From Ramazzottius varieornatus (Eukaryota > Animalia > Tardigrada), in the NCBI GenBank assembly GCA_001949185.1, contig BDGG01000005.1:1663249-1727248 (forward strand): a stretch of DNA of 64,000 nt, given 5' to 3'. Each line of letters starts with the position of its first letter. Position 1 is the stretch's first letter. The position numbers and the translations under genes were made by a program. The notes beneath the pieces were generated by a model that searched no databases, had not been told where the DNA came from, and saw only the letters and a program-made list of their open reading frames with translations. Below are positions 1 through 50,800 of this stretch, piece by piece.

Positions 1-2442
1 AAGACTACGCGAAACTTGATGCCGGCAAGCTTCACGACCTCGTTGCGTCCATCAAAGAACAGTTTTCTTTCGCTCATCATCTTTCAGTCGGAATGTGTAG
101 TGTAAACGCTTTCAAAAGTACTTTCTTAACCAAACAATGCCCGTCATATCTGCATATGACCATGGTAGTGCTGTTGATGCTTCGAGCTCTCGGAGTGGAA
201 GTTCGGTTGGTCTACAGCATGCAGCCAGTGGCTGTCAAAGAAACAAAAGCCACCAAAGCAGCTTCTGCCACGAAGCGGAAAACCCCAGCGAAGTCCAAGA
301 AAACCGTGAAAGAAGAAGAACTGTCGGGAAGCGAAGCTGAGGGGAAGCCAAAGACAAAAGTTAGGGCGAAGCGAACTGCTGGTAAGCGGAAAAGAGCGCA
401 GTCAGAAAGCGGCGAGGAGGAAGTAGACGAGAAGAATGCAGTGAAAAGACCGGCAAGGAAAGCAGCAAAGAATGCGTCTGGGAAAAGAACGGCGATCAAA
501 ATTGAAGAGGACGAGTCGAATGCTGATGTGGAAATGTCCGAAGCGGAATTGTCGGAGTACGAAGGGGAGAAGAAGGGAAGGAAGAAGAAAACTCTCGCCA
601 AAAAGACCTCGCCTAAAAAGGTGAACCAAACTTGCTCATTCAAGGCCATGCTCGTATCTGGTGCTCAAACAAAGCCGTGCCCATAGAGCGTTGTTTTCAG
701 ACTTCGAAAGTATTTTGAATTTATTACATTAAATCGGCTTCTTCCGGGTATTGTATGCAAGAAACATGACAGTGGGGTTTTTCAGGAGACAAAGGGGAAA
801 CCTGAAGAAGCGACGAGGAATTTTCTGGAAGTTCCGAAAGCTGCGTCGGTGAAGGGCTCTCCGAGCACTTCGTTTGTTTCAGCTTCCTCTGCCGTGTCCC
901 GCAAGTCAGTAGCGAAGGAGAAGGGTGTTGACTACTGGCTAGAAGTCTATTGTGGTAAGACTCGGGCGTATGTCTCTGTTCACTGCATCAGCGGAGAAGT
1001 GGAAGCTGATGCGGACATCGAGCGGAGTGCCACACAGCCGCTGCACTATGTGGTGGCATTTGGCGAGAAATCTTCATTGAAAGATGGGACACCGAAGTAC
1101 GCTACTGAATGGCTCACCGTTAACCGGAAACTCCAGGTAAGCGAGAATCATTTCAAACCTGGGCTCAAAGTAAAATGGAGCGAATTTTGCGAACCTGCAT
1201 ACACGGTACTGCAGATTAACTGTAGGCGTAAGTATTCAGGTACGTGATGGATGAATGTATAGTCTGTTGGGCGACGCTTTCAAGGCTTGATTACGATTTT
1301 GTTCTATCTTTGTTCCGTTTTCCAGGTCGATGTGGAATGGTGGAAGGATCAGATGGACATGTACCGACCGCTGGACAAGAAGAAGGACGAAGCGGAAGAC
1401 AAAGCGATCCACGAGATACTTCTTCAACGTCCACGACCCGACATTCCACAGCTGTACAAGGGCCATCCACTCTACATTCTTCGTCCTCATCTCGCCAAGT
1501 ATGAAGCGCTGTACCCACCAAATCCAATCCCAGTAGGCGAAGTCAAAGGCGAGCCTGTCTACCTACGAGAGTGTGCGAAGCTGCTGCATACTAGGGAGAA
1601 CTGGTTGCGCGAAGCTAAGACTGTTAAGAAGGGTGAGAGACCCTACAAGGAAGTCAAGAAGGTCCAAAGAAAGAAGAAGATGGGCCGAAGAGGCAGAAAC
1701 GACCCGAACGCGATGTTGATGGCCCAGATTACCGAGAAGGAAGCGCAGAAAGTGGAAATGGTCGGTCTGTTTGGCGAATGGCAGATTGAAGACTTTGTTC
1801 CACCTGTTGCTGAAAATGTAAGTTGCCTGTCATGTACCTGCATGCACTAAGCCTTTTATAATAGGAGACGTTGGAGTATGCAGATGTATGAAAGTGTGTG
1901 GATTTTGCTTGATTTGATGTGATTTCTGGGGTGTAATTAGGGAAAGGTTCCGAGGAACTCCTACGGAAACGTGGAACTCTATCAGCCGCAGATGCTTCCC
2001 ATTGGATGTTCCTACATCAACATCAAAGGTAACGGCTTGAACCGAGTAGCGAAGAAGCTCGACATCGACGTGGCGGCAGCAGTGACCGGATGGGAGTTCC
2101 AGGGATGGCGAGCTCATCCGGTGATTGAAGGATGGGTGGTCTGTAAGGAGTACGAGAAGGAGCTGATGAAAGCTTGGAAGAAGGAAGAGGTAATATGCCT
2201 GCATTTTCTTGCAGTGAAAACGATTGTGTCTCGCACGAGTGGGTTTTTAGGTTGAAATAGCAAAGCGAGCTAAGGAAAGGAAATCTAAGAAAGCGATGGA
2301 TAACTGGCGGAAGATCTTCAAAGGCCTGGCGTTGAAGAGAAGGTTGCAGATGAAGTATGGAATTGACTTCACAGCGAGTGAAAAGCTGAAAACCTTCATA
2401 CAGAAGACCGACATGACGAAAGTGGAGAGCGACGAAGAATAA
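1..2442 (+). CDS. XPC: XPC/Rad4 DNA damage recognition protein, 5' part outside window; exons approx <1-620, 786-1136, 1326-1817, 1941-2189, 2251-2442
   Basis: Motifs DYWLEVY, YKGHPLYILRPHLAKYEALYP, LHTRENWLREAK, LFGEWQ, GKVPRNSYGNVEL and GWEFQGWRAHPVIEG match the Rad4 transglutaminase-like and BHD domains. GT-AG junctions keep the frame. Confidence 0.95.
1193..1246. repeat. Family B bipartite inverted motif (XPC intron)
   Basis: acctgcatac-N29-gtattcaggt. Confidence 0.7.
1831..1890. repeat. Family B bipartite inverted motif (XPC intron)
   Basis: catgtacctgcatgc-N30-gtatgcagatgtatg. Confidence 0.8.
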
Positions 2443-2841
2443 TCTTAATAGTCCTGACCGTATCAACTCAAATTCAGTTCTTTGTCTTAGAATATTCCTC
2501 GTTGCGAACCTGCTACTGTAATATTGTGTTTACTTGAGGAGTCTGCTTTGGGAGGTCCTACGTTTCATAATTGTCAGGTTTATCGTTCTCATTCTGCTTA
2601 ATCGTCTTTAATTTTATTACATGAGTATTTACAATGGCTCCTCGAAGTCTCGCAGAGAAGATGCATGGAGCTACGGATTCTTGATTTTTCAACAAAACAA
2701 AATGTGCGAAAATGTTGTATGTGTTCCATGGTTCTAACAACGTCACGGCCTCGGTGTGACATCAAAATTATAGAATTCAAAAAAGATCTTAATATTTTGG
2801 GGGAGTGAAACGCAAACGGGTCGTGAAAAGATGAGACAAAC

Positions 2842-5203
2842 TTAAACTTCCATTGGTCCACTCTCATCAGTTTGAGCCTTCAAAAAGGCCTCGTACTTTT
2901 CCTGGTCCAGCTTTGTGAAACTGTTGGTCTTCCTCTTGCTTATGGGCTTTCCTTTGTTCGTCAAGTTTCCGCACGGTTTACCGGCTGGTGAAGCTTGCTT
3001 GGCGGGAGTTGAAGGGGCAGATTTCGCGGCCTTGTTGGCAGCACGCTTCTGCAGCAGCCCTCCAAACTTCTGGTTGTTCGTCTTCCTTCGGACTTCTTGC
3101 TCGGCGTTACTGCAAAACATCGAGTTCAGGAAGTCCTTGTCAACCATGGAACTACCGTTCTCGAAATCATGAGATTCGTAAGTGCCATCACAGGTGAAGT
3201 GCGTGCCGTAGATAAAGCTCTTCTCTCGACCCATAGATTCTTTGCGAGTTACTATATCCACCGCAGTGGTGAAAACGCGAAGGCTTTCGAGCAAATACTC
3301 CATTGGTTCTCCTATAGAAATAAAAAGGTTGATCGTCATAGGACAGCGACGTGAATACATCTGAAGACTTGGCCAACGAACTCGACAAGGTTGTTTCCCA
3401 AGTGGCGCACACTTTCTGTATTACTGGCAGTAAGCGTGCCCCACTTGAGGAAAAAAATTCTTGTCAGAGTCACTCCCATTTCAAAAATACAAGCAGAAGA
3501 ATTCCGATCAAATTTCACATTTACAGTCCACAAGTTCTCTGTTCCATCTTGGACTCACCCTAGTGATCTTCACGTTCGAAAACAATAGCATTGGACAAAA
3601 ATAGGTAAATTTACCTGTGACGCCCTTCTTCGAAGTCTCGATGATCGTCTGCAGCAGCTTCTTGAAGCATTTAGCCGCTTCTTTCTTGTCACTACTGGCC
3701 TGAACGCATTATTTTCAAAATATCACCACAGTCAAAAGCAGTACACAATGACAACAAAGTTCACCAATGGAAGATTTGGACAGAAATACTCACCAGTGAT
3801 TCTTCCGTTGCCTTTTCGTCGTTGGCGAGTCTTTGAGCCACAGCCGGATGAACTCGCGCGCGTTCGAACTTGGAGGTCTCGAACTCGGTGGGAACCAGCT
3901 GGGCGCTCTCGGTCTTCGAGAACTCCACCATACGCTTCTTGACCGTGCCGATCGATATTTTTGCCAAGCTAATCAGCTTCTCCAGGTCGATCTCAACGTT
4001 GAACGTACGGGATGCGATGACGATGGCTGCCGCAGTCACACCAGCCGGTTTTCGACCACTGTCCAACCAGTCTTTCTTCATGCGCTGCACTATGGTTTCC
4101 GCTCGATCGCGAACCTAGAGGGCCGCACATCATTCTTCGTAACGCCACTTTGACAAGTCAAAAATATTATAGAAATGGGGCTCGGCAAGCAGGCTAAACA
4201 AGATCGCTTTCCCAAGTGGCGCACATCTTCAGTGTTATTGGCTGAGAGCGTGCGCAGCTTGAGAGAAGCCATCGTGTTCAGTTTATTGTCCAACTTTGCC
4301 GAACTACCAAGATGTTCTGACTGGAAGAATTTACCTTTGTGAACAGCCAGCTGTCTCCGATGAGCTGGTAACACAATCGCTCAACTTGTCTCACCAGGTC
4401 TTGACTGGGCATTTCGATAGACAGACAGAGAACCAAATCGCGAACTGTTTTACGCAGCTCGTGGAACGTAGAGTTGCTTGGCTGAAGAAAGTCTGACATT
4501 GTATGGCTCATCTGAGCTCGCCGAGTGCCTGAAGAAAACGAAACGTCGTTCGTCGGTTCAGAAGGGACGAAGAGTTGTAATAAAGTGATCTGGCGCTTAC
4601 CGATGTACAAGCAAGCGGAGAGAAGCAGTTGGTTCTTTCTTCCGCTGGTCATCAGGTTCCTCTTGGCTTTCTTGTAGACTTCGAAGGCATCCCGAACGAC
4701 TGCTTCGTCGCACTTCGTCCCTGTCGCAATACCACGAAGAATGTCTCTGTTCTTCTTGAATATCATGGCTTCGGACTGTTGCTTTGACCAAGCTGGAGCG
4801 TCCACTGAAACAGAGAGAAAGCAAGCCAGAAACGATCGGATTTCCGTACCAATCTCTGGTTTTCTCAGCACTTTCCGACGGTCAGAATGCCTCGAAGTCA
4901 TATATACACATCAGTAATCACTTACGGTCCAGCTGGCTGTTCTGTCCAGAAATGCAGGTCTTCCCCGACGCGTCCTTCTCGAACAAAAGAGGGCTGATGA
5001 ACGGCTGGTCATCGATGATCAGACCACAACCTCCGCAGGAAATGGAACTGCGAGCCTGCTGCAGTAGTAGTGAGTCCGTCAAAAGACAAGCCTCTGAGGA
5101 ACCGTACAACAAGGAAACTCACCTCGGAACCTGAAAGTGATCTGGTGTGGCCATAACATTCTCGGCAGACTGGAATTTCCGTCTTGCCGAACAAGTCAGC
5201 CAT
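2842..5203 (-). CDS. BRF1: Divergent TFIIIB BRF1-like factor (Zn ribbon, two cyclin folds, degenerate C-terminal TBP-binding block); multi-exon
   Basis: Zn ribbon CRECYG...CGGCGLIIDD; SGRKNQLLLSACLYI; MQRMKKDWLDSGRKPAGVTAAAIVIASR...TVKKRMVEF resembles BRF1 [21 protein letters not shown]...TLRKRLTEF. Confidence 0.85.
3391..3455. repeat. Family A palindrome (BRF1 intron)
   Basis: cccaagtggcgcac-N25-gtgccccacttgag. Confidence 0.85.
4173..4280. repeat. Family A palindrome (BRF1 intron)
   Basis: aaatggggctcggcaa...cccaagtggcgcac-N25-gtgcgcagcttgag. Confidence 0.85.
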
Positions 5204-5901
5204 CCTTCCGCCGACCAAACCGTCCGGTCGGCTCCTTTAAAAAGTTGTGGGGAAGTCGTAGCCTGGAGGAACTTAGAAGAGGGAGGATACCGAGAAGCCA
5301 CCTCCTTTTGCTCAAACAAAGTCGTACTTTCAAAATCAAGAATCAATCGTACGAGGGTGATATGCGGAAAGTTCGGGCGGAGTGTACCGTCGCCAAACAA
5401 GCTGACCAATCATCAGGCTTTCCACAGTGACGGCGCGAGCACAAACTCCCACGCGAATCTGCGACATGCACATGAAATGCACAACCAGTGGTTCTAACCG
5501 GTTCTTCATACGCAGCTGACTGAGCTGAGTACGCTGGGGCATACCAGCTTCACAAGGGAGAATGGGCAATGGCCCATGGCAGCAAAGTGACCGGAGGAAC
5601 TTCTGGTTTATTCAAAAAATATCGTCGAACTTCTCAATTTTCTGTACCGCGGCGAACTGAACTTTGCATTTTAGAGCCTGTGAAGAGTAAATCTGGAAAA
5701 GGGTAACCACATCTTGAGCGAAACGAGCTCTGGAGTCTGTAATGCATGCAGTATTCAGGATTATAATCATATAAACGACCAAGGACAAAAACGTCACGGG
5801 AAAGATCTCCAACGACGAGCAACTCGCCGTCTCACAAAAACTGCAGAAGAATTTAAAAAAAGTTATAGAATACGATAGAGCTACCTAAAGGCCCGAATAA
5901 C

Positions 5902-7157
5902 TTAGGCTTCTTGAGACTGGGCATTGCTGGCGGCGTGCTGAGTGGATGCTCTGGTAGAGGCTTTGCCTTTTCCGGCAGGAGGCTTACTGGTGCGAGGTTT
6001 CGGCTGAGGAGGGGCGAGCTTGACTGCTGCAGGTTTCGGCTGAAGAATAACCTTAGACATTACGTGCTTTGGTTGAGCAGGAGCGGGAGCCAGTAGTTCC
6101 TCCGGAAATGTATCATCTCCACTTTCTCCTTCGTCGTCTTCAATGTTCTCGTTGTTTTGGGCACCTTGATCGTTCTCAGTGACATTCTGAGTATTTTCAT
6201 CGTTGCTGTCATGGGCGTCGTCCTCTTCCTGGTCGTCTTCTTCCTCCTCTCCAGAAGACTCCAACTCCGACTCTTCTTCCACTGTATCCGGGCGAGCAGG
6301 AGCTTTGTTCGCTGGAGCTGGTGCTGACTTTGGAGGAGGAACTTTCGACGAAGCGATCCGAGACTTCTTGGCAGGAGGAGACTTCTCTGTGGCTGCAGCA
6401 GGACGCTTCTTTAAAGTCTGCTTGGCCTTCCGCGGTTCTTTTACTGCCTCTTCAGCTCGCGAACCTCCAGGTCCTCCAGACGTTGCCTTGGTCTTGAGCG
6501 GCACCGACTGAGTCTGCTCTGCTCCCGCACCTCCAGACTCTGTCTTCTTCTTCAGCAAGACCGGTTGGATTTGAGGGATGACACCGCCCTCAGCAATGAT
6601 CACATCTCCGAGGAGTCGACTCAACTGGAAAAAGAAAGCAGAAAGTTAGGAACCATACTTCCTGGTCGCGATACAAAGCCATTTTGCGTTGCGCGGACGC
6701 ATGACGTCGATCATAGAAGTCAAGTGGATCATCCGACGCCATTCAGAAAGCAGAACAAGGAAGTGGAAGTTTCCTTCAGTCTCACCTCTTCATCGTTACG
6801 AATAGCCAGCATGATATGTCGAGGAGTAATGCGTCCCCTCTTGTTGTCACGAGCAGCATGTCCCGCCAGCTCCATGACTTCCGCAACCAGGTATTCGATG
6901 ACGGCGGCAGCGTAAACGGAGGCTCCAGTTCCGATACGCTGGGCATAGTTGCCTTGCTTCAGCTAGAAGGCACAAAATTGAATGCTTTATCAGTTGGTCC
7001 TTGGGCTCACCTAGCAGCGAGAATCACTTACGTGCCGATGGATACGGCTGACAGAAAAGACGATTCCGGCCTTCTTGGCGTGACTGGTCGGATCCTTCCG
7101 TCTTCTGCTTCCTTCTCCCTTCTGCCTCTGAGTTCCTCCTCCCTGAATCGTAGACAT
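5902..7157 (-). CDS. Histone H2A variant (~341 aa) with a very long C-terminal tail ending SQEA; exons 7157-7032, 6962-6786, 6624-5902
   Basis: Spliced translation gives [101 protein letters not shown], a clear H2A fold, followed by ~210 aa of low-complexity tail. Confidence 0.93.
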
Positions 7158-7616
7158 GGCTGTAGGAAGTCCAGAACTAAAGGATGGATCAACAAAAGAG
7201 CACCACAAACACGCTGGAAAGTAAATATAAAATGGCGAGGAAGAGGAAGAAAAATGAAGAAGAAATCAGGAAGCGAAGACCCGACGGCGAAGCACAACCA
7301 TCGAAATGACTGTAGTTGAAGTTGAAGACTGAATAATCGCTGCTCTTTCACCCGAAGGCTTTGCTCACCCGGATCCCTCATCACTATCGCTGTCGATGAC
7401 TTTTCAGACCCTTTGTTCATGTTGTTGAATCTCCAGTCTCATTGTAAGAAGGGCGGTTCCTCATGTACGCGCCAAGACTGAAATACCCCGGGAATGCATC
7501 ATCAAAACATGAAGTTTTCCCGACTTATTCTTTCACTGATTGTTCTCAAGCAAAACAGTAAACAAAGTTTCGAAATATTTTGAGCTTTTTTGAGCGAAAA
7601 CTGTTTGCTAAGGAGA

Positions 7617-8685
7617 CTAAGAGTAAAACGAAGCAAAGGTAAGGAACCCCGAATGCCCAGGTACTTCCCACGGTACAATGGCAGTTGGAAAAGAAACTTG
7701 GCTGAAAGGAGTCTTGAGCTTGTTATCTCTTCGCTCATCCGTGTTTGCTTCCGCTTGAGTAGGAATCCAGCAGTTCATTGTCAATGTTTTAACTTCTAGC
7801 GGTCTCATCAAGCATTCTAAAGTTACAATATCTTTGAACCCATGAGCCTTCAATTCCTTACAGGTTCTCTGGACTTGTTCGATACAGGGAGAAAAAGATC
7901 CGAGGCGACCTCCGCTTTTCTTCAAGGCTTTCTTGGCATGAGGAACTGCAAACCACGGACAAGGAAGGTCGAGCAGGATCGCATCCAGAACGCCATCTAG
8001 CGTTCCATATCCATCCTACAGAACACGGAAAACAACTTAACCGCCATGCACGCACGACGTCACAGAGCTGCGAACGAGTAGCGACAATGTGTGAGATACT
8101 GTAGTGACGTCACACGCAAGCGGTAACAACACGCTAAAATGACTAACTTAAGCTGAGCCAAAAATGGAAATCACGAACCTTGTAAACGTCCGAATGTTGT
8201 GCCGTGACGACAGAAGCGAGCCCATGGCTATTAATCTCTTTCTGGAACTGCAGAACGCGTAGTTCATGGTAGTCGAACGTGAAAAGATGACCATGCGGCG
8301 CAACGGTGCGAGCGATGGCGTGAGAAAGCGATCCACTTCCGGTGCCCGATTCTCCCACGACGGAGCCAGGCTTCAGGTCTAACTGCATCAGGATCATACT
8401 GATATCGGGGAGATAGAGGATCTGCGTCCTGAAAGGCATAGTTTTGGTCCACAGTTCTGGCGTTGGTTGGAGTAGCTGGACGTAGCCATTCTTGCAGCGA
8501 AATTTCGTTCCATAGCGATGTCCGATTATGCTCTGGAACGGAATTGCGCCGTATTTGGTATGGATCGCGGTCTTCCCCGCCGATAGATCCACATGGACAG
8601 CCAGCATGGTTGTAAAATCGATGTAGACTATAATGACATCTCCGGCCGCGACAGTATCCTTTCGGTTTTGGTTGAAGAAGCTCAT
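7617..8685 (-). CDS. TRMT61A: tRNA (adenine-58-N1)-methyltransferase catalytic subunit; exons 8685-8179, 8015-7617
   Basis: PTPELWTKTMPFRTQILY, GESGTGSGSLSHAIAR, LDLPCPW, SFSPCIEQVQR, GHSGFLTFA. Confidence 0.95.
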
Positions 8686-8908
8686 TCTGAACGACTGGCG
8701 TCCTCCTGCTTCGTGTCCGAGCGTTTCACTGAGGCGCAAACAGCCTCCAAAACTTCCGGGAATTTGACGTCCGTGTGAGCAGAAGATCAACTCCAGGAAG
8801 CTTCATCCGTCCCAGAAACCTAGGAAAGAAGAGTCAACGGGACAAGGAACAGGATTAAAGATTCAAAAATAATGCGCCATTCGAACGAAATTAAAATTTA
8901 TTCAGAGC

Positions 8909-9112
8909 CACGTGGTTAAGCTGTACTTACGAGAGGGCACGTGCTCTTTGTTTGCCCTGTTGATGATAGAAAACAGCCACCAGGCACCTTTGCCCTGGAT
9001 ATGAGTCATAGTAGGCGGCACCGCAGCAACAACGCATCTCCAGTGTCAACTTCAACGTCACGTGTCCTCTCCAGTAAAATCAGATGGGAAGTCAGCGCGA
9101 ACAGACCACGTG
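8909..9112. promoter_or_regulatory. Cluster of four CACGTG E-boxes in the TRMT61A/TOPORS head-to-head promoter region
   Basis: CACGTG at 8909, 8938, 9059 and 9107 between divergently transcribed genes. Confidence 0.5.
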
Positions 9113-9482: not shown

Positions 9483-12400
9483 ATGGATACGTCCGGAATG
9501 GGGAGCCATCTTCCACAGCCTAGCGCGGGATCTTCTAACGCGTCGCTTATGCAGATGAGCACTCCTCGATCGACGTCACAAGGTTAAAAATACTCCTCAC
9601 TATAAAGTAAAAACCCATCGAAGATAATTCCTATATCGTCTTCTTGTCTGCGAAGATACGGGGAATTGAAGCGCGGAAGCCAGCCGGATGTTTGGCATAA
9701 AATTAGGAAAAAATTCCAGCTCGGAAGATTATTTTCGTACGATTGATTGCATCAGTTTCTGTTTATTTTTCCAGATGATCGTTCTCATCAACCGATAAAT
9801 GGTCAAGTCCACTACTTCGGTCCTTACTCTCCTCCCGCTGTCACTTTCTCCGTCAGTTCTCCGTCAGTTGGTAGAGCTTTGAGCTCTACCAACTGGGAAG
9901 CGTTGCTGAACAGCCGCGACATGGATCGCATCGACGGTATTCCTAACCCCGAAACAGACGACATGGAGCTCGACATGGAAACGGAGCCGCCGTCCACCGA
10001 GCTAGCCTTCGCTAATCCTCTCCCAAGACGTACCGGTCCTGAAGTTCCTTTCCGTCTACCGTCCAACGACCATAATTACGCCCGAAGAGAGTCCAGTGCC
10101 GAACACAGCTCGCCTGAGATCGCCTCTAACGTTCGAAGCTTCACTTTTCGACCTCTTTCTCGCTCCACAGCTAATATTGACTTGACCGAATCCTCTTCGT
10201 CATCCTCCCTTTCCTCTTCTCTTGAAGGACAGGCCAACAACTCGACAATCAGTTCGATTACCAGTTCTGGGGAAAATCGGAACGAAGGCGGGTTTCGATC
10301 GAGGTTTTCAGCGAGGCTTCGCAACGCTAGTCTGTCGCTTCTGGGCGCTGTAACGGGAAGAAGGTCTGCCTCCCCGGAGATCCCCTTACCTTCTCGTTCT
10401 ATGGCACGACGTGCAGCTGCTAGTCGGGAAGCTGATAGACCGAGGAGAGTCCTGAGGCCACCTAGTCGTCATACTCCAAGATTCACCGACATGTCTCCGT
10501 CGCTCGATTCCCTTTTCTCGAACTTCTTACCTCGTTCAGCGACTGTGAGTAAAGTGGGTGAGACGGGGCTAAACGCCTCGAGCAAGAAGAAGATTTTGCC
10601 GAAGCTGAAAGAGACCATGCAGAAGTTGGGGATTGACAGTGACCAGCCCAGATCGAGCCGAGCCATGACGCCGGACAAGTGCTCCATCTGCCTGGAAGTA
10701 CCGACGAAGTTGACGGCCAGTCTGACGTTCCCTTGTCTTCACACGTTCTGTGAAGAGTGCATTTCGCACTGGGTGAAGACCAAGAATTCATGTCCTAATT
10801 GCCAAGCTAATGTGACGCGAATTGTCTTCAACCTTCGCTCCGAACACGTAAGTGACGAGGCTATCCCGAACTTTCATCAGATTGAACTTCTATGTGACAA
10901 AGATAGGAATCAGACACGCAAAACCGTAATACACGTGACAGAGAAGGCTGAATATTTTGCATAAGAGGAAGGTGGAGAAAAATTACCAGACAAGATCCTA
11001 GACAAAAAAACTTGTTTCTCTGAGTGGCGCACGTTGTCAGACAATAAAACCGGAAGCATGCGCCACTTAGGGAAGCGACCCGCCCGTGTTTGTTTGCCGA
11101 GCTCCCAAAATATTAGAGTATTAAATTTTGTGAAAATGGAAGCGAAGTTTTGGAATAGATTTCAACAAGGTTTTCTGGTTTCAGGATTACGATGTGAAGC
11201 CTGTGGAAGAAAGGAACGAGTTGATGAACCCTGCATTGCCGGTTGATGGGTATGATCTCGTCGTGGTTGTCGAAGAACCCTCGTCCTTCGATGTTGCACG
11301 GTCTTTTGTTTTCAGCGACGTTTTCGAAATCTTCTGGCAGCTGCATCGACATCGTTTGGAACGACAACGACAGGATCGAGCACCAGAACGGTAAGAGTAT
11401 TTTGGTTTTTATGGCTGTTGAAATCCGGTTGAAACGAGTAGAGTTGATCTTCCATGTGTAACGAAGCCTGCAGAATAACTGATAGCGCATATAGCACAAC
11501 CTTTGTGACTCAACGTTTTCTTGATTTTGATGATCGTGAGTCTTTGTGACTTGTCATGCCTGCTGATAACGCTTCGGTGATCTAATGAATACTGATTACC
11601 TTTTGTTTGCGTTTTTTCCTACTTGTCTTCACTATTGGAAGACAGGAGTTCAGTCAACTGAGGGACGGGTCTTTCTTATTGATCTTTAAAAATTACTTAT
11701 CCCGTCTTTGATTTCGTTGCAGAACTGTAGCCGAACCCGCTGCGCGAGCTTCCGTAACTCGACAAGTGACGGTTGGTCGCGGTAACCCGTATACCAACCG
11801 GCATCCCATCCGAGAAGCTTTCGAAGTCGGGAGACTTTACGATCGCGCCTTTCCTGACCAGCCGAACGCTGAGATTCAAGCCCTGGTACTGGTCAATGGC
11901 TTTGAGGTAACAGCACTAACAAGAAATCTAACAGAGAATCAGTATTTTTCTCTTTGAAAATATGCGCTGACAAAGATGACCTTGACTGTCATCCACGTGC
12001 ATGCAGTGACTCATGCAAGAAGTGTCCTATGCAGGCATGCAGGTGGATGCGAAACTACGGATTTCGTGAACCGGGCATCCACCTGCATGCTTGAAGCTGT
12101 GCATCGAGAGCGGTACATGAGTACGTAGGAGGGTACGCCGTGGGTGTGTCTTTTTTGGCGAACTGTCAGCTCGCCGAGGGACTCAGGTATTGTGTCTGAT
12201 TAATGGTTTTCTTTTATAGGTATCTCGTGTGGAGTTCCGTCGTCGTGTATACGGCGAGAACCTTCAGGGTGGTGTAAAGATTTTGTCGGTGGAACAAGTT
12301 CGCCTAGCGCCTAGTCAGCTCGAAGCTTCCACCACCAACTATCAAGGGTACTGGGACCGTCTCCAGCCATGGCTGCGTCGAGAAATTACGGCAGCTATGG

Positions 12401-14621
12401 TGCCAGAAGTCTCCAACGCTCAGCGCGAGCATGCTTTCGCAGTCATTGGTCATGTCATGCGATCACCGTCTGGCGTCCAGATGGTGGCCTTCACCAGCGC
12501 CGTAGATAACTTCATGTCGGCCACTCGCGCGCTGAAATTCTGGGACGAGGTGATTATGCGTTTCCATTCGTCTTCCAGTAATCTGGCCCAGTGTGATCTA
12601 TGTATTATGAAGAGGAACGCAGGTCTTGGAATTTGTTTGGAAATACGTAACATACTGAAGAGCAAAACGCTATCAGTGTTTCACCAACCTACATACACGG
12701 CCACTGTTATATGTTTCAGATTTGTGTACGCAGGTCGCTGAACATCGGTGAAAAGCTTTTTCCGGTTTTTATGACTCCAAGTCGAACGTGAAGTTTTGCT
12801 CTTTTGAACAACTTTATGTTTCGGCGGTGGAATTCCATTGTGGTTTTATTGTTGCAGATGTCACAGTTTCTTTTGAGTCGCACTCAAATGGGCGTGTGGG
12901 ATAAAGACATGAAGTACTTTGACGTGAACGGCAGCCTTGTCACAGTCCCTTCGACGCCTGTCCTAGTGGGACCTGTTCGCGGTCGCGATTACGTCGTGTA
13001 TAGTGTTCCAGAGACCGACTACTCGGACAGCGATGACAGCATTCAGTACGTTGGAACGGTGGTGCACAGTCAACAAAGCCCGGCACGTACCAGATCGGTG
13101 ACGACGACTTCTTCCATCGTGGCGAATTTCGATGAGGACGATTCCATGAACAGTCTCGGTATGTACAAAACACCTTCCTCACTTTCGAAAACATCCAGAT
13201 CAGTTGAATGCTGCAGAATTTTTGATCAAATCTGAACTGGAATAAGCTTAACTCACTGCTTGAGGCTCAACGGCTAATATTTCATGGACCTGCATACTGG
13301 CTTGACACCGCAACTAAGGTTTTGTGTGTTCAGGTGGACGATATCATTTCATTTCAAGCCTAACAGCCAGTGGTGCTCGGAGTCGGAGACTCGGAGAGTT
13401 CACCAAACGGCATAAAAATACGCAAGGTCACGTGCTCGACCATAGGTCAAGCCCTTGTCTAGCCTTACGCCACACCTCCTATATTCTGATTGGCTATCTT
13501 CTGAACTGTAATTTAACATCAAGAAGACGTCCGGATAAAGGCCACGTGCACGTAAGACAGCTGTATAACATTTACAGTTGTTCTGGAGCGTGATTATAGC
13601 TTTTCGAATTTCAAACAAGTAACTGCAAGAGAGTTACAGATGAAATTGGCATATGTTTACCCGGAATTCCGGCACATTGTAGAACGAAAATTATAGTTTT
13701 CCCAAATGGATGCGGGATGACGAAGAGCGAATCCTCTCAATCAAAACGTGCAAAACGGCAAAACGGTCAGAAGTTCGCTCAAGATTTTCCGGAGAAAATG
13801 ATCTGATCAGCGGCCCAGAAATTTCCCTGTTCGAGAGTGCTCCCTTCCCTGTTGTGAACCCGACCTTAGTTTTTAGGATGGACAAGCGTCGTGTGTGCCT
13901 AGTTCACATATGAAATCCTAGTTCCACCTCCGTGATTGCAGTCAAAAGTATTTAGGTTTTTTGGAATTAGAGTAGTATTATGGTCTAATTACAACCCTTA
14001 ATCAAAGCGGTCAAGTTGCCGCTGTCCCATGTTTATGCCGTTTGGTGACCTCTCCGAACACCACTGCTGACAGCATCTGCAGTGACATGCGCTTGTTTTC
14101 TTTCAGGCGATGAGTACATTCCTACGCGTCCTACGAGCTCCATGTATACGAGCGACGCAGACTCTGAACGTATTTCCTACCGAAGAAGGCTGCGAAGTCC
14201 TTCGCTTGCAAGTTCTGATCCTTTCGACGACGACTTCGTGGTAGCGCTGAGAACATCCAACAGAGCTGATAGAAGCCCAACTCCTCCAAGAAGATTCACT
14301 AGGAGCCCAGGTCTCCCAAGAAGGATGGTGAGTCGCGCAGTGCGTGAAGAGTCCTCCCGGTCTTCGAGATATTCCATGCTTCGACGCTTAGCCAGAGAAG
14401 GTCGCCATCGTCGAAGAAGCCCTACGTCATCCGAAGAATCGCGTCCTTCCTCACATTTGTCCAGTCGAATACGCCGCGGAAGAGAAAGCAGCGAACGTCG
14501 TTCGACATCGTCCAGAACTCCGACAAGTTTTTCGCATAGAACGGAACGCAGACCTGGGCGGCTGGAACGACGAGCGAGAACAGTGCGGTCGCGTCGAGAA
14601 GAAACAAGTTTGCGCCGATGA
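9483..14621 (+). CDS. TOPORS: TOPORS-like RING E3 ubiquitin/SUMO ligase with Arg/Ser-rich C-terminus; multi-exon
   Basis: C3HC4 RING CSICLE...PCLHTFCEECISHWVKTKNSCPNC; FRRRVY...WDRLQPWLRREI resembles Topors FRRTLY...HRLVPWLKREL; RS-rich last exon (~14109-14621). Confidence 0.8.
11011..11107. repeat. Family A palindrome (TOPORS intron)
   Basis: gagtggcgcac-N25-atgcgccactt...tttgccgagctccc. Confidence 0.85.
11990..12129. repeat. Family B, two adjacent units (TOPORS intron)
   Basis: catccacgtgcatgc-N30-gcatgcaggtggatg and catccacctgcatgc-N30-gtacgtagg. Confidence 0.8.
13283..13340. repeat. Family B bipartite inverted motif (TOPORS intron)
   Basis: catggacctgcatac-N28-gtgttcaggtggacg. Confidence 0.65.
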
Positions 14622-15974
14622 AAATGGGCCATAAAAGGTTTTCAGGGAATTTCTTTAGTATTTTTTTTTTGAGTGGGGACTCTGGCTGTGAGATGGACGG
14701 TCTCATTTTCTCGATGGAAGGTTAGCTGTTCATTAAGTAACTTTGCTTGTGAAAGTCGTTTTCCGTTCTACGCGCAGTGTCTTTCGTGGTTTCGTATTCA
14801 ATAATTATGGAATTTTCTCTTCTGTATTCATGTTGCACTTACTTCGATTATGGCTTCTTGCAGTACCGAGGAAGTCTTCCGATCTTCAGTGAAATTTTAC
14901 CTTTTTTCTGCATCTTGGGGAGACTTTCTGATCTTGTGTTTTACCTGCTCTGGTGGTGGTGTTTCGTGATGAGAATAGTGTTCTTAGTCCAGTTACTTAT
15001 CATAGATACCGTACTCCATCAGCCAGTGATCCTCCTGAATCAAGCCGGACGGTGGCCCATGCGTGGACTTCTTCGTCAAATGGATGCACGAGAGAGCTTT
15101 TGGCGGCATCGTCCTAAACAACTGGAGTGGTTGGAAAGTCTTCTGAACGACTTCCTCTTGGACAACGACGTCGAGAAACTCGCAACGCTGAACGGGAAAG
15201 CACGTTATACTTTCGCCAAGTGATGCTTCGATGCTTTAAAGAAGTCATGGCTGAAAAACGTTTTCGAGAATTGTCGAAATGAACTGGCGCGACTGGTCAG
15301 TATGGTGAACGGGGCTTTGATTGTTGGGGATAGGTGAGTGAAACGGACTTCATGGGAGGGGGACCCATGCGGAACGGTGTCGTTTCGAAAACTTTCTGGC
15401 GCGCTTAGAGCCCAGCGGACCGAGTCACCACAACTTGCAGCTGCGATGATACCATTAATACGGGATCTTGTACTGAATGATGCCTGTCTTCGGCGCTTCG
15501 CTGTCCGAAGTTTCAGTCTTTCAAGCGATACGACTAGGTAATAAATTTTTTCCTTGTCGATCGTTGCAAGTTATACGGTACTTGATTTGATGATTAACTT
15601 TGGTCGGGGTTTCTAGCATCGACCAGTTCTCTGTCATCTATGTAGAGCCGTCACACGCAGAAATAGAGGACACCGAAATGAACGTCAGTTATGGAACAAA
15701 ATTGGTATACTGAAGGTTTTATCGGTTTTCAAATGAGAAGAGCCAGTCCAGACCGCGTGCAGTGAGATCAAAGGATTAGTGAGGAGAAGCCGAGAAGAAA
15801 TACTCTGCCGAACCGTGCAAAAGAGAGTGAAGTAAACCCACAACTAAAATAAAATCTCTGAAAAAAACTAAACATATCAAGTACTACAGAAAGCACCGGA
15901 GCCGCCAAAGAATACCTGACTATCAGATCAAAACAAAATAAAAATCAAAGCAAACCAAGACCCAGAAAAACAGA

Positions 15975-32074: not shown

Positions 32075-32175
32075 AGTGGTCAGCCAATCAGATCAGGCGA
32101 GGGAGGCTGAGCTGAACGCATTGAACCCACCATGCTCTGCACATTTCTGATCGGTGCTTAGCGCGTACAGCACAC

Positions 32176-42200: not shown

Positions 42201-42619
42201 ACCGATAGTCTGCAGCATGCTACGCAATGATTCTGTTGTGTGTGCTTTTGGGGAGCCGGCTTTCGATCTATCCCTATCGGAAACCGATAGCGCAACGTAA
42301 TATTTTACATTGACTTTCGATTAAAATTGGTGGAACGTTTTGTTGAGGTATTGTGATCCTCATTGCGTTATTCAAACAAATAACTTTTTCTTCAAAAGAA
42401 GACCACAATGAAACAGGAGACTAAATCAAAATCAAAAAGTTACGTGGACACGGTTCTTCCCTTCCCAAGATTCAAAACGTAAAATATTTCTTCGAGTCCT
42501 TTAGTCTCCTTCACAGTACCCATGACACAAAAAGCATTACCTCGCTGTATGTCAAGAGACAAGCGCTGTTTGAAATATTGAAGAGATCTAGGTATTGTGA
42601 TGGTTTTCTTCTATTGTAG

Positions 42620-43326
42620 TTTACGGTGCAGGTGAACGAGGACATTGCTCAACTTCACGACCTTTTGACGCAGCTCGGGTCCAACAAAGACACGCCCGAA
42701 GTGCGCAACGACATCCACAAAGTCATCCTACATTGCCTTGACGTTGCCAAAAGTGCTAAAGACCGCTTCCTTTACATTGTGATTCAGTAAGAAATACCGT
42801 CTAAAATGTTGAAGATATTTCTGTTAGTTTTGCATGTCTCTGCTGGTGGCGGAGAACCCAACAACACCGTCATAAACCTGCATGCATGGTATTCAGTTGA
42901 CCGGCGCGCACTGGGGTATGCGGGTTTGTGATAGTTGGAGGCAGACGGTTTGCCGCTCTCTCCTTCGTAGTGGAAAGTTTTCTTCTGATTACCGATTGAA
43001 TGTTCTTTTGCAGTTGCCGCGATAACGTGAAACTGCAGAACCAAGCTGGCCAGCATATGGGCATCTTCGGCTTTTGCCTGACTTACATGCAGAAAGAATT
43101 ACAAAAGTGCCTTAATCTAATTACGGGCTTTCCCGGAAAGGGCGAAGTCTTGACTCCAGATAGCCTCCATATGTAAATTAGGACCTTTTTTCCCCTCATA
43201 AACCGTCTCGAAACTTGTTCGTGACTGTCATGGTTAATTTCATTTGCAGTGAGATGGCTGAGCTCGACGATGTGCTGCATAACGTGGAGAAACACGTCCA
43301 CTACATCCGCCCAAGTACGGAAACAG
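42620..43326 (+). CDS. Internal exons (42620-42786, 43014-43171, 43250-43326) of an R7BP (RGS7-binding protein)/syntaxin-N-like helical protein; gene ends unresolved
   Basis: Spliced frame FTVQVNEDIAQLHDLLTQLGSNKDTPEVRNDIHKVILHCLDVAKSAK...FGFCLTYMQKELQKCLNLI...EMAELDDVLHNVE; splice phases are consistent. Confidence 0.55.
42871..42930. repeat. Family B bipartite inverted motif (R7BP-like intron)
   Basis: cataaacctgcatgc-N30-gtatgcgggtttgtg. Confidence 0.8.
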
Positions 43327-43470
43327 GTACGGCCGAACTCCGCTGTGATCATCCAGGGCCTGCATGCCGTCATAGAACCCATAGGTTGATTCTGCGTTCT
43401 ATTTTCTATGATAAATTTCTATTCCCTGCTGACAATCGAAAAATAGGCAGTAAAAACTAAGCCTTTGTTT

Positions 43471-43590
43471 CACCTGCATACAGTGTGCTGCGTGGTTAGC
43501 ATAGATTACGGGTATGCAGGTTTTCGGATTCCATGCACCTGCATACAACGGACCTTGCGGTTGCAGTGCGGTCTCCGTATGCAGGTGCGA
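43471..43590. repeat. Family B, two adjacent units
   Basis: cacctgcatac-N30-gtatgcagg and catgcacctgcatac-N30-gtatgcaggtgc. Confidence 0.85.
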
Positions 43591-44274
43591 GCAAGCAGGG
43601 TATCTTGCTCGTGCCGGCCTTTTGGTCGTCCAGACGGAAGAGGGAACTGCTCTATTCGCCCGGTATGGTTGAATACGATAATAAGAGTTCGCCCTCGAAA
43701 AGCTGTCAAGAGCGTGCGACTGTTTGTTCGTCATAGCATTCAAATCCCTGATTTGTAGTAAGACATGGCTCTTCAGTCATGTGAGAGATCCCCAAGGTAG
43801 TGCACCGGATGAAGGTGCACGCGACGTCCCAGAAGTAGCATTCTCAAAGTCAATACGGGCTGATTATCGTTCCACCATGCTGCTCCAGACACCTTTTTGC
43901 AAATAAAACCTTTCAGCAGCTTTCTGAGTTACACGCTGTACCTAATCGGCGGAAGTCATCTGACGTGCAAGCACGCCACATTGCGCAGCTCGACAAACGG
44001 ACGACAGGGAAACAAGAAGAGGTCCCCTTGATAACCAAATCAACTTCAAGGCCTTAAACGCGCTTGAAAGTTCGTCTCTTAGATTACGTAATGGAATAGA
44101 GAAAATAATGGTTCGACCATTGCGTGCTTCCAAATTGCCATCAAGGACTCAGTCGCAATGTTCGTTTGGGTCGCTGACGTTTAGACTCTTCCCAATCGGT
44201 GATATAGGAGTTACATAGCTTTAATTTTGTCGCCCTTGAACGTTCCTTTGTAAATTTGCTGGCTAGCTTGCGAT

Positions 44275-44404
44275 ATGGGACATCGGCAAATGAATTTTCC
44301 CAAATCGTTTTCCCAAGTGGCGCACGCTGTCAGATGATGTACTGTATAACAAGGAAAATCTGCGCCACTTGAGCTAACGATCCAGGCGAAATGACTTGCC
44401 GACA
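44275..44404. repeat. Family A palindrome with lengthened (34-nt) spacer
   Basis: atgggacatcggcaaa...cccaagtggcgcac-N34-ctgcgccacttgag. Confidence 0.85.
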
Positions 44405-45676
44405 TTTGGCAGAGCGGTGAACTTCAACCACAATGACATGACAATGATGGAACGTTTTGTGCACTTTTGTAGAAATGGTGGAGCTGTACCGAAGTAAATC
44501 AGACCGTGCGCCGTCGTCACGGTCCGTTGAGCGTATTTCTGGAACTTCCATAGTGACTTCCCCTCTCGCTTCTTCCACTTTTCCTGTCTGTAAAGGATTA
44601 CTGTGCATGCCTAGCAAATACATGTGATAAACTCTTTTGTGACTTGCAGTTGCTGCAATAATCGAGTCGTTGCTGTGTGCTATATTTAGACTTTAGAGCT
44701 TTTCGCGGTTCGCCGAACATTTATGAGCTGGGTCTAGTCCGGCCTTAAGTTTTAGAAGTTTGTATTGAGTTTGACAGCCGTAAACATGATCAACAGAGAT
44801 TGTGAAATATGACTGGTAGCTTCTTTTAACTTGGTAATGACCCTCCTAACGCTATATTAGATTATTCATAGCCGATCAAATGGAAGATCATAAATCTTCA
44901 TCCCACAAGCTCACTACTCATGGGACCAGAACGAGCTCACTGCACATTTATCAAATATCGCTGCGATGCAATCACGGAGTATTTATTGCGTGAGAATACA
45001 TGTTCATGGTTCTTCCTTTTCTTTTTCCTTTTCGCGGTCGGTCTTGCAAATTGTATAAAAAAATTGAACTAGATTGCTGTGCTGGATGGCGGAAGTTCTC
45101 ATTGCTGTTAGGTGGGCACCTGCGCCGCTTGGATGGGCGATTTGGTTCAGTTCGTTTGCCCACGACTCCAATACGAGTAACTTCCGGTTGCTTCATCGAC
45201 GTTGCGCGGATTCACGTTCAGGCTCTCGCTGTTCTTTCCACCAGGAAAGAGTTGGTCTCGAGTGCTTTCGCCTTCGAATTCAGTCTAGCCTGAAGAGGGA
45301 TGTTTCAGCAAGCAAGTGTTGGTAAATACCCCGAGGCAATCAAGCGAGAAAGAGAAAGCATGCAGCGAGTGCGAGGTATCGCCGTGCGAGATGCACTGTT
45401 GATAACTCGTACTCGATACCTGAAAGGATGTCTTGACCGACCTTCAACCCTCGCCTGCATCTTCAGCTCACTCGTTGACGATTTCATTGTCATGAATTCG
45501 TGGTAAAATTTACTTGGTGCAAAATGAAGTGGTGATGAAAGCATCATCAGCAGAACAGGTTTAATCCGATACAGCAGAGTTTATCGAGATTTCAGTACCG
45601 TTGAATCACTCTACATCACTTGGCGCATTTCTCGAATATCTTCTTCAACGTAACTAACTTCCCGGACCGGTGTTTC

Positions 45677-47592
45677 ATGATGCCTGTTCCCAGCAGAAAG
45701 CATGTGGTGGTGATGCCATTGCCGGCCATGGGACACATCTGTCCCTTATGGGAACTGGCCAAGAAGATTGCCGATGAGGACCACTTCGAGGTTACCTTTG
45801 TGGTGTCGGAGTCGAAGGTCCACGAGATGGAGCAACGCAAGATCTCTTCGACGTCCAAGAAAGGCAACCACGGTGTCCGCATTTATGGCTTGAAGGATGG
45901 GTTGACCGAAAGCCTGGACAAAACTATCGATCCCAACCATCTACTGGCTCTCGTCAAGGAGATCAGTCCAGCTCAAAGAGCCTTCCTCGAAGCTCTTCCG
46001 ACGAGGAACCAGCCCGGAAACCCCATTACGATCCAAGGTACCGTAGTACACTAAATTTACGTTCTTGACACTCTCAAGTGCTCACTTTCTTTCTTTGTCG
46101 ATTGATTGGGGCAAAATACTGTTTAAAAATGCTACACAAGGCAGTATCGACACGGAAGTGAAATCAAACTGCGGTACTCAATCAATCTGAGCGTCCTGTT
46201 CAGAATCTCTGCAGAAGAGATATTGCGCGCACTGTCACAGACTTTTTCCTACAGTGTTCCGTCTGCCTTTCTCACAGGCATATCTCCCGTCGATGCGGTC
46301 ATCGTGGATAACTGCTTTCCCGATCCAATTCCCATTTGCCGGAAGCGCGGAATTGCAGCTCACGCCTTCAGCGCCTCCGCGGCCTGGACAGTCCTCGGCG
46401 TTATGACCATCAACGACCAGACACCAACCATGTCTGACGAGGCCTTCTTCGACGGAACTCACGAGGACCTGGCACATACTAAGGCAGTCAAGAGCCTGAA
46501 GGAATGGCTGGTGGCTTGCCACAATGCCATGTCCCAGGCTTCTTCCATCTGCTTGAACTCTTTCGAGGACCTCGAACCCGACTTCGTCAAGAACCTCAAG
46601 ACCGTCGCACCCAACGTCGCTGACACTCCGACGTACTTCCTCGGTATGGGTAGCTTCCGGTCTCACGACAAAGTAGATGGGACGTTGGCGAATGAATTTA
46701 GCCAGATTGCTTTCTCGAGTGGTGCAGGCTTTCAGCCAATAGCAATGCACACGTGCGCCGCTTGAGTTGAAATCTAGCTGATTCGGGTCATTTCCTCCAC
46801 GTTCCGGACTGACTTATCATCTGAGTAACCTCACTTTCAGGTCCGCTATTGCCTTCGGTTTCCGACTTTGCTGAACAAAAGACCGAGTACGCCGCCAACG
46901 TGGTGAAATGGTTGGATCAACAGAAGGACAAGTCGGTCATCTATGTTTCCTTCGGGTCGATCGCCTTGCCTAGTGCGGAACAGATTCAGGAGATCACGAA
47001 AGCTCTCTTGGCTACAAAGCGACCCTTCATTTGGTCCTTGGAGAAGCAAGCCCAGTCAACCCTGCCTCTGGAGTGCTGTAAGCATCTGAACAACTGCGAG
47101 AAGCAGTCGGACCTTGCTGACTGCCCCTACTTGATCGCGTCCTGGCAGCCACAGAAAGAAATCTTGGCCCATCCGGCCACCGGACTCTTCATCGGACACT
47201 GCGGCTGGAACAGTACAATCGAGAGCATTGGAAACGGGGTACCCAAGCTCGCATTGGTAAGTTGCTAACTGCGTCTATTTTTCAGTGTATCTTGTTCATT
47301 GTTCTAAATATTTTAGCCGATGTTTGGCGATCAACACGAGAACGCGGAATTGGTGGAGAAGATTGGCTGCGGTATAATGATACCGAACATCTCTCAAAGA
47401 GGCGAACGGCTGGTCCCTGCCGAGGAGATCCTGACCAACATCAAAGCTATCACTGGTGAACAAGACGGGAGCAACGGAAAGAAGGTCAACTATTACGGAA
47501 ACGCGAAAGAATACTCTGCAAAGGCACACGAAGCTATTTCGCCATCTGGGAAATCTACCCGCGACTTCCATAACTTCTGCATGAATTTATAA
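45677..47592 (+). CDS. Soluble UDP-glycosyltransferase (GT1) with plant-type PSPG-like box; exons 45677-46037, 46278-46643, 46841-47256, 47317-47592
   Basis: HVVVMPLPAMGHICP; WLDQQKDKSVIYVSFGS; WQPQKEILAHPATGLFIGHCGWNSTIESIGNGVP...PMFGDQHENA; no signal peptide or C-terminal TM. Confidence 0.92.
46677..46800. repeat. Family A palindrome (UGT intron)
   Basis: atgggacgttggcgaa...gagtggtgcag-N25-gtgcgccgcttgag. Confidence 0.8.
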
Positions 47593-47822
47593 AAAAATTG
47601 CAGACTGGCTAACAAGAATGAAACTCAAAATTTCTCGAATGTAACACAACTAGTTAACAGGTAGAAACAAGAACCCAGGAATACGAGAAATCACACTGTG
47701 CGATTCAAAAATAATCTAAACTCAAATCTCATCGTAGACAAAATCTCAGTCTTTGGCAACCGTTTTCACGTACGTACCACTTATAAAGCGTACAACGAAA
47801 CTAGTCTACTTTCTTTGGTCTC

Positions 47823-50800
47823 TCAAACTGCAGCGAGAATATTCCGACGAACCACCTTCCAGTTCAGGTACTTCGTCTGGACCTCTCTTGCTTCTTCGTA
47901 CTTTCTTCTTCCCACATACAAACCATACAGATTGAATGCCGCCCGGTACGAAAAGTCCACCACCGGGACCAGGTCTTTGGGCAGCTTGGACAAGTCAGTC
48001 TTCTTTTGGAGCTTGAGACACTCTTTGTAGAACTTGATGGCCTTCTTGACATCGCCGAACTGTTGCGCAGCTCGGGCTTTGTTGTAGGAGACCTCTTGAC
48101 ACACTCCCCGAGCCCTGCCGTACTTGTCCAGGTACTTCATTGCTGCGTCGAAGAGCTTCGCGCGGTTGACACGTGAAACGGCCTTGCCGCAGGCCAGTTG
48201 CACGCTGACGACGCCGAGGTTCAGCCAAGCTTGCCATGGCATCTTGTCGTCGCCCACCTTCTCTTGTAACTCAAGGTACTACAACCAAAACCAAAATTTG
48301 GACGTGTGACTGAACAACGTAGCAGTCCGGACACCGAACGCCTCCATCTCATAGGCGTGCATATTCAGTTAGGCACTTAGGTCACTGTTAAGACTGCATG
48401 CATGTGCATGCATAAGTGCACACATGAAAACAGCGCTGGAAACCCTGATCTCAAGCACCTACCTACCCGCCTCGACTAACTTCTGTACGACCAACTGTAT
48501 GCAGGTACGTGCGAAGCTCGCACCTTTCTCTGTCAGTTAATCAACGTCAACTTTCGCGTTTCAATTAGTTTGGCGAACAAAACATGGACAAGGTAAGAAA
48601 GCTTACAGTTCTGCAAAGAACAGTTCAAAAAACTTTATTTAACACTCTGCGTACGACGGTCCTCTTTGTGTATACAATCACTCAGTTTTATTCACCTCCC
48701 AGTTTTAGCTTTTGGTCTTTCGGGTCTGGGTCTTTTTCTTTGCATGTACCTCGGTCTTCTCACCAAAGCAACACTAATGACCAGCGGTCAGCAAAACCCC
48801 AGCAGCTGGAAATTTTTTCTACGGTTTCGGGTGGTTTTGGTGAAATTTGGTGTTTCGTCTCTTCGCGCGAGACACGTGCTCGGTATTCGCTTACGATTAG
48901 AAAAAACTGGAGCACTGGGGACAGTCTTATCTATCGAAGCCGAGCCTGGGATAAATTTTGTAGTCATCAGTGCGGTCAGAAGAAAATCAGGACGACCAGT
49001 TCTCCCTTTTGAGATTTGGCGTTCATGGCCTGCCAATTATCCGAATTTTGAAATTTCGAAAACTACGTATTGGTTGGACCAGCCTCCGCAACACGTTACC
49101 AGCCAATAAAATTCATGTATACACAAAGAGGACGGTAGTATTCTGCAAACATGAAAACGATCGTGCTGAAAGTGTTAAGTTTGGAACTGCAAACTGAGTA
49201 CTTACCAGTTTTCTGGCGCGGGTCTTTGTGCCAATGGCCAGCGCCTCGTTAGCCATGATCATCTGAAGCTCCACGCTGAAGACCTCGTGCTTCTTCATGA
49301 AGTGTATAGCGAACTTCCCGACGGAAGCTCGGTACAGCACGACAGTCCTATCTGGTATCAGGTAACTCATTAGGTTCCACAACTCCACCGGCATCTTACC
49401 ATTCCGTCCCGCGTTCACCATGCCACGCAGGTAGTCGTACACAAACCGTAACTTCTTGTTCACCGAACTTTCTCCCATCGAAGGTTCTATTGTCGAGTTC
49501 CGCGACCTAGAAGCTGATGTGTCCGCCGATGTGATCTCCAGGGAAGCTTCTGCGGCATGTTTGCGGCCCAAGTGGAACGCCGCCACGACGATGGCCAGCT
49601 TGATCTCGTGAAGCTTTTCTGGTTCATCGTGGAGCTCTTTGGTGCGTAGAGCGTTGAAAGAGATCTCTACCATATCAGAATACCTAGGAAGATCCAAATG
49701 TGCCATAATCATCTTTACGGCAGGACTGGGAGCTGGGCAAATAGACTCAACCAGCTCATTTTCATCAGTGGCGCACACTTTGGGTGACATTGGCCGGAAG
49801 CGTGCGCCACTTGAGAAAATCATGGCTGATTCTACCGTTTCGTTACGACAACTCCTAACAAGGCCGTGCCGGGCACAAACTTGATAGGCGATTTCGTAGG
49901 AAAAAGGCGAAACCAATCGGCGATCCAAAATTGGCGACTTACTTTGACCAGAGTTTGTCATAATTATCAACTGACTTAGGCAACCCAGTCAGAGAAAAAA
50001 CGGACTTACTGTTCAAGTTGGAATGCGATGGCCGCTCCATCTACAGCGATGCGTCTCCACGTCGCCAGATTGATTGTCTTAGCGGCGATGGCTGGGCAGC
50101 TTTCTCTGTAGATCTTCATGGGCTTGTCCAGAATGTACGGAGTCTTCAGTTCCCACAGAAAATCTTCGGCATTCAGAGCAACACGGTGCTGGAAAGTGGA
50201 CTGGAGTATCTTCTTGGCCAGTTCGACTACTTCCGCCTTGCTTTGTCGATCTTTATTCAGCGTCGCCTTGGCGTAGTACTCTTCGTACAGCTTCACCTGC
50301 GTTTCAGCTTCAGAATCGACATGTAGCTTCTCGTTACCGTAAGGTACAACGTTAGGGAACTCAAAGGACAAAGCGTACAGACGGTTCTTGGCGTCGCGAC
50401 AAGACTGACGACAGTTGAGACTCTGCTGGTAGGCTTCCTTTGCGCTTTCAACGTTGTGGAGGTGCTCGTAACAGTTCCCCAACAGGTTGTACATGTGGGT
50501 GTTACGGAAGACGGCGATGCAGCTTTGGATGTGGAGGATGAGGTCTCGAGCCATGCCAGCCTCACCGATGTGGAGAAGAGCCCGACCCAGGCGGAAGTAC
50601 ACCTCGCTGCTACTGCAAAACAAAACACTGTTACCGGACCAACGCGTGCATGACGTCACGCACTCTGATTCAGCCTGCCATGAACACATGACCAAACATC
50701 ACACCAGGATATAGCAGATTTAGCAAGCCATAGTGTCAAACCACAGCCAGCCCATTGGTTGAGACGTCACTGCGAACTCGGCCGTTGGCAAGTCGAACTT

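Follow-up and report, generated by a model that had tools for sequence, protein, structure and literature searches.

Several known systems are comparable to the spaced inverted repeat described here. Paramecium internal eliminated sequences are transposon-derived; their interiors are unrelated, and only brief inverted consensuses at the ends and a length that peaks have survived. They are excised from somatic DNA, and the need for excision keeps their ends. V(D)J recombination signal sequences and Transib ends consist of paired inverted signals with CA-first termini. MITEs, or miniature inverted-repeat transposable elements (e.g., Stowaway and Tourist), are very small and non-coding, occur as thousands of dispersed copies in either orientation near or inside genes, have inverted 5'-CA..TG-3' ends and keep these ends better than the interior. 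Here we describe family B, a short spaced inverted repeat carried eleven times by a 64,000-nt stretch of the genome of the tardigrade Ramazzottius varieornatus (assembly GCA_001949185.1, contig BDGG01000005.1, positions 1,663,249 to 1,727,248 of the forward strand; hereafter the window), in which two copies of the 10-bp box ACCTGCATRC face each other across ~30 nt. It shares with MITEs every trait just named. Against a MITE feature list that includes a flanking 2-9-bp target-site duplication (PMC12595863), family B has terminal inverted repeats, is small, non-coding and high in copy number, and exhibits a weak but reproducible signal of shared descent over its whole length (24 of 28 positions). 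Unlike MITEs, however, it has no target-site duplication that we could find, lies at the small extreme of the size range (60-70 bp), forms no recognisable subfamilies and keeps best an inner 10-bp box instead of the extreme terminus. In contrast to the Paramecium sequences, the conserved part of family B is 10-15 bp and not a loose 8-mer. Family B is an element of an ordinary kind that stands out by two puzzles, a rate contrast and an exclusion pattern.

Patterns were counted over the assembly (55.8 Mb in 200 contigs, the window being on contig 5), with the reversed pattern as control. Perfect half-sites numbered 2,087 (143 in the control) and exact units with spacers of 20-40 nt numbered 275 (none in the control), while units with a spacer of exactly 30 nt rose from 446 at one mismatch or fewer to 1,026 at three or fewer (two in the control). 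From perfect half-sites and perfect pairs, the total was estimated at ~3,400 units. Within the window itself, 26 half-sites with at most one mismatch were present versus 5.2 expected. An earlier note, made from the letters of the window alone, had proposed a genome scan in which half-site distances should spike at 30 nt: the family is indeed genome-wide, and in a local sample of 310 kb of fetched sequence (the window plus loci L001-L035) the inward spacings peaked sharply at 30 nt (4, 11, 35, 7 and 2 units at 28, 29, 30, 31 and 32 nt respectively); the outward and direct half-site spacings were broad. About half of the units stood in doublets with unrelated spacers. Apart from singlets and doublets only one triplet was seen, and the gaps between the cores of neighbouring units were variable (15-45 nt). 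A BLAST search with a perfect doublet returned no match but the doublet itself. The distribution along contig C1 was uneven: two stretches (4.71-6.36 Mb and 0-1.02 Mb) held no perfect unit and the remainder one per ~0.17 Mb; these stretches may be poor in genes or unusual in some other respect.

The anatomy of the unit was derived from a stack of 150 half-sites, which gave the consensus tcTtTCA.GC followed by ACCTGCATAC, mirrored on the other side, with no conserved position further out. The plan is CA-NNN-box-N30-box-NNN-TG between T-rich and A-rich flanks, with the arms CAYGC and ACCTGCATRC on both sides 30 bp apart. Between the two arms, the cores were complementary at 92-98%. Among units taken without requiring a perfect core, deviation from consensus was 10.5% of positions in the core, ~20% in the terminal CA five bases outside it (i.e., kept in ~80% of arms) and ~55% in the three bases between CA and core (kept in ~45%). 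The boundaries are sharp: the conserved half-site stopped ~20 nt outside the spacer, and the flanks from 20 to 180 nt out had no common homology among units. A larger introner-like element was considered and rejected, as whole introns were not palindromic and the 160-nt flanks were without shared homology. Unpaired ends hinting at a long element were not seen in the local sample.

Compared pair by pair, the spacers look random, and in this sense the earlier note was right that they show no visible similarity. When spacers were oriented unit by unit through expectation-maximisation before stacking, however, a family consensus emerged (ACCAAGCCGTGCAT..ACTGTGGTGCGCAA), with 40-55% agreement per position and a summed information of 5.3 bits versus 2.2-2.5 bits in shuffled spacers. 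Two disjoint subsets, units with 0-1 and units with 2-4 core mismatches, agreed on the consensus base at 24 of 28 positions, and the same spacer prefix was visible in lists of perfect units oriented simply by their first base. Because the consensus exceeded that of shuffles and was reproduced by disjoint subsets, the units were copied from a common ancestor. Moreover, the consensus is asymmetric, which makes it inherited sequence and not the symmetric preference of a dimer; thus the unit spread as one piece. A recoverable consensus that had decayed as much as the arms had been named in advance as the mark of an ordinary old MITE. The consensus was recovered, but it had diverged far more than the arms, and the excess conservation of the arms therefore still needs explaining. 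Only one pair of perfect-core units had similar spacers (C3:1145602 and C11:88205, matching at 23 of 30 positions). Their loci (C3:1145522-1145730 and C11:88125-88333) have homologous flanks, including a 34-nt block with one difference, and so represent a segmental duplication. The pair differs at none of 20 core, seven of 30 spacer and three of eight outer-arm positions, a comparison biased by the fact that the pair was found among perfect-core units only.

The contrast between boxes and free positions is the real oddity of family B. At free positions the mean pairwise difference was 0.685, equivalent to ~0.53 from the root and a Jukes-Cantor (JC) distance of ~0.9; on the other hand the cores were off consensus at 0.105 (JC 0.11), a gap of ~8-fold, which upholds the earlier view of well-kept arms around a lost spacer sequence. 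This contrast is not an artefact of unit picking, because three mismatch counts agreed: i) the partner of a perfect arm carried 0, 1, 2 and 3 mismatches in 9, 15, 7 and 1 cases respectively (Poisson ~1.0, with ~13% orphans); ii) unselected units were distributed as 3:12:15:10:7 over 0 to 4 core mismatches; iii) the genome-wide ratio of 446 to 1,026 was 0.435, in line with a Poisson of 2.2 per 20 nt, and an exponential spread of ages is excluded (it requires 0.5 or more). Core decay was even across the ten positions (chi-square p ~0.2) and comprised 53 transitions and 29 transversions; it looks neutral in pattern and single-aged. Units with better cores had spacers that strayed more from the consensus (Mann-Whitney p = 0.012). 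Two trivial sources of the contrast were dismissed: arm-to-arm repair, as changes in one arm were not compensated in the other, and CpG decay, as non-CpG outer positions had also diverged and the box of a second family, family A, contains CpGs.

Family A is the second spaced inverted repeat of this genome, a palindromic MITE with a recoverable consensus of 113 bp plus ~10 bp per end, i.e., 113-130 bp long, with CAAGTGGCGCAC boxes 25 nt apart; 84 merged copies were found in the local sample. Like family B it is palindromic, intron-enriched and often in doublets, and its paired inner boxes have diverged similarly from consensus (0.11-0.14). Unlike family B it is longer, ~five times commoner in the local sample, unrelated in box sequence and clear in consensus over its whole length, its free positions having diverged 0.29 versus ~0.53. 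Its terminal and inner boxes (0.11-0.23 diverged, versus ~0.30 elsewhere) were kept two to three times better than the rest. Target-site duplications of family A, sought as a clock for the time since insertion, yielded no clear one. The two families exclude each other at close range: none of 58 family B clusters had an A element within 480 bp, versus 8-15 expected by within-locus permutation (probability of zero, 5e-5 to 5e-10). In the 310 kb they were never found in one intron, although the same gene may hold both in different introns (e.g., window positions 10848-14106) and same-family doublets are common. Nesting of B in A was abandoned as a dating tool, since the two families are never close enough to nest.

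Family A also provides a rate for insertions and deletions (indels). At its unconstrained arm positions, a JC distance of 0.37-0.40 was accompanied by 0.015-0.016 indel events per nt, i.e., ~0.04 per substitution. Family B spacers had ~0.019 events per nt, and 44% of them were not 30 nt long; even among perfect-core units, 17 of 36 (47%) had another length. At a free-position distance of 0.9, ~1.1 events would be expected per spacer, leaving roughly a third unchanged, while 56% were observed unchanged. Thus the deficit of indels is at most two-fold. Selection on geometry, which the earlier note had put forward to explain kept arms and length around a lost spacer, is required little, if at all, for the spacer length to persist, and strict geometry is not supported, indels being rare and so many perfect-core units having other lengths.

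We give an even chance to the reading that family B is a decayed MITE-like family, ~3,400 copies strong, of a palindromic DNA transposon that is non-autonomous and 60-70 bp long, and whose boxes were kept by selection for mobility; a share just short of a third goes to selection in place, and all other readings together receive about a fifth. The ancestral element would have begun with a T-rich flank and CA, followed by three unconstrained bases and the box ACCTGCATRC; after an asymmetric middle of 30 bp would have come the mirror image, ending in TG. Copies would have inserted in either orientation and mostly into introns, often immediately next to an existing copy. What a transposase needs for cleavage and binding would be the CA/TG ends together with both boxes, which would have stayed intact while the family was mobile, with every position drifting since. 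The 30-nt spacing would then be the inherited element length blurred by rare indels, not a separately selected trait. In this account the movement as a DNA transposon and the cause of box conservation are inferred, and the boxes would bind a protein, most likely the transposase. The kept CA ends, the analogous terminal box of family A, the even decay of cores and the more drifted spacers of better cores may all be taken, partly by analogy, to favour mobility. Several results nevertheless weigh against it. Selection for mobility implies replication, so that some relatives are expected, and none derived from transposition was seen: close spacer relatives numbered zero among 1,830 local spacer pairs, and inspection by eye of ~110 oriented perfect units revealed none apart from the duplicated pair. 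For a family of transposons, an 8-fold gap between boxes and free positions is wide. Copies of the young age that their cores suggest should still exhibit a target-site duplication, and direct flank matches were not in excess at offsets of 0-13 nt from the core and lengths of 2-8 nt; the duplication may have been lost by decay if the copies are old. An autonomous element with family B ends was not found either, though a proper search was not made. A rival that we consider possible but clearly weaker holds that one ancient burst of a palindromic mini-transposon was followed by purifying selection on the boxes in place, as sites of a host factor or of a domesticated transposase, with neutral decay of the rest, namely the spacers, the outer arms and target-site duplications if there were any. 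Such a history would suit the star-like spacers without transposition-derived relatives and the peaked, not exponential, distribution of core mismatches; age would explain the absent target-site duplication, the duplicated pair (biased as it is) changed in spacer and outer arm and not in its cores, and homotypic doublets and the restriction to one family per intron could reflect function. It sits less well with the even decay over core positions, which is unlike a typical binding motif, or with the kept terminal CA, which is a transposon feature. Plain selection in place does not predict that better cores have more diverged spacers, the many perfect-core units of other lengths fit a strict dimer geometry poorly, and the upkeep of sites by the thousand under weak selection is difficult. 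Somewhat more doubtful again is its functional extension, in which the boxes at several thousand intronic sites would form putative bipartite sites at which a dimeric host factor, or else a domesticated transposase, docks, and the one-family-per-intron rule would reflect a function in intron or chromatin organisation of a very compact animal genome.

The remaining readings are improbable. That the units act as RNA, each folding into a hairpin within its intron (stem of 10-15 bp, loop of 30 nt) that would be a precursor of small RNAs, an element for splicing or a masked U1 or recursive splice site, we regard as a long shot. The arms do pair in predicted folds, five of six units having z-scores between -2.2 and -3.3, but folding yielded nothing beyond the trivial stem of the arms. 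Pairing of mirror positions within the spacer was at chance level (~0.25), the free arm position was without covariation, and arm mismatches were uncompensated. An extended hairpin was accordingly discarded. Non-coding units lay between same-strand coding segments in 55% of cases versus 26% for random non-coding positions, as an RNA function would have it; relative to the inferred gene strand, however, 35 were sense and 38 antisense, a count that overturned a by-eye impression of six out of six sense and left the orientation random. No Rfam match covered a unit at gathering or permissive thresholds, and the cassette releasing ~30-nt RNAs that the earlier note had offered as a candidate finds no support in the pairing, the strand counts or Rfam. 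A weak match of L031:1214-1288 to the mir-9465 precursor model (28.4 bits versus a gathering score of 63, E = 0.044) is probably chance. The arm contains a CAG|GTRNRT motif with no pyrimidine tract before it, and its one use was as an ordinary donor at 13333 in a minor RNA contig; the RNA contigs otherwise exhibited only whole-intron removal or retention and no recursive splicing intermediates, which such contigs cannot show. Still less credible is a recombination or excision signal, i.e., RSS-like or internal-eliminated-sequence-like ends that enclose a stretch of 30 bp, or arms that inserted on either side of DNA already there, even though CA..TG ends, inverted symmetry, a peaked interior length and the lack of a target-site duplication would all agree with it. 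The RSS-like signal suggested earlier failed on its components: neither the heptamer CACAGTG nor an A-rich nonamer nor 12/23 spacers are present, and both arms are the same 15-20-mer. Moreover, the inherited asymmetric spacer consensus means that the spacer travelled with the arms, and the C3/C11 pair exhibits a whole unit inherited in place. A CRISPR-like (clustered regularly interspaced short palindromic repeats) repeat-spacer array was likewise rejected, the repeats being inverted, arranged as singlets, doublets and one triplet, and separated by variable gaps.

If family B is only an old MITE, its value is mainly in annotation: one element of 60-70 bp accounts for ~0.4% of a compact genome and for a sizeable part of its 300-nt introns. 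The ~8-fold lower divergence of the boxes and the mutual exclusion of A and B within single introns are the features that could matter more; were selection in place true, a tardigrade would carry, in family B, numerous binding sites of transposon origin.

In the window, all ten units reported in the earlier note are present, and eight of their starts are as given; of the other two, 1193 is the start of the core in the CA..TG unit 1188-1246, and 43471 becomes 43467. In order, the ten spacers measured 29, 30, 30, 30, 28, 30, 30, 30, 31 and 30 nt, confirming seven of exactly 30. An eleventh unit had been missed (12682-12740, spacer 29, one mismatch in each core), in intron 12550-12857. Two units belong to an XPC/Rad4-like gene on the + strand: 1188-1246, which lies in an intron (29-nt spacer, core mismatches 0/1), and 1831-1890 (spacer 30, 0/1). 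A + strand gene at 9500-15000, its strand given by RNA contigs and a RING finger being present, holds the doublet 11990-12049 (spacer 30, mismatches 1/0) and 12076-12135 (spacer 30, 0/3, the right core decayed), both in intron 11907-12219, the eleventh unit, and 13283-13340 (spacer 28, 0/2) in intron 13159-14106. Further along, 42871-42930 (spacer 30, mismatches 0/1) is followed by the doublet 43467-43526 and 43532-43591 (spacers 30), with all four cores perfect and 15 nt between the cores of the pair. The decayed unit 48350-48410 (spacer 31, mismatches 3/1) adjoins a TPR (GTF3C3-like) gene on the - strand and has 48452-48511 (spacer 30, 2/0) as doublet partner. RNA contigs define the introns of four units, those at 11990, 12076 and 13283, as claimed earlier, and the eleventh at 12682, and the XPC/Rad4 and TPR genes, on their + and - strands, are consistent with the gene names used there; open reading frames at the putative R7BP-like gene had no Pfam match. 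Family A copies in the window lie at 3401, 11023, 17899, 19096, 21864, 23636, 24289, 24361, 44316, 49767, 59674, 62150 and other positions.

RNA contigs across the RING-finger gene also revealed an alternative exon at 13216-13333: one contig joins 13157 to 13216 over a 58-nt intron, and another, the minor low-depth contig mentioned above, takes its donor from the CAG|GT in the right core of the 13283 unit and joins the exon end at 13333 to 14106. The same gene has four introns of 308-337 nt (10848-11184, 11391-11722, 11907-12219 and 12550-12857) beside others of 58-66 and 192 nt, and three of these four hold one A element or one B cluster.

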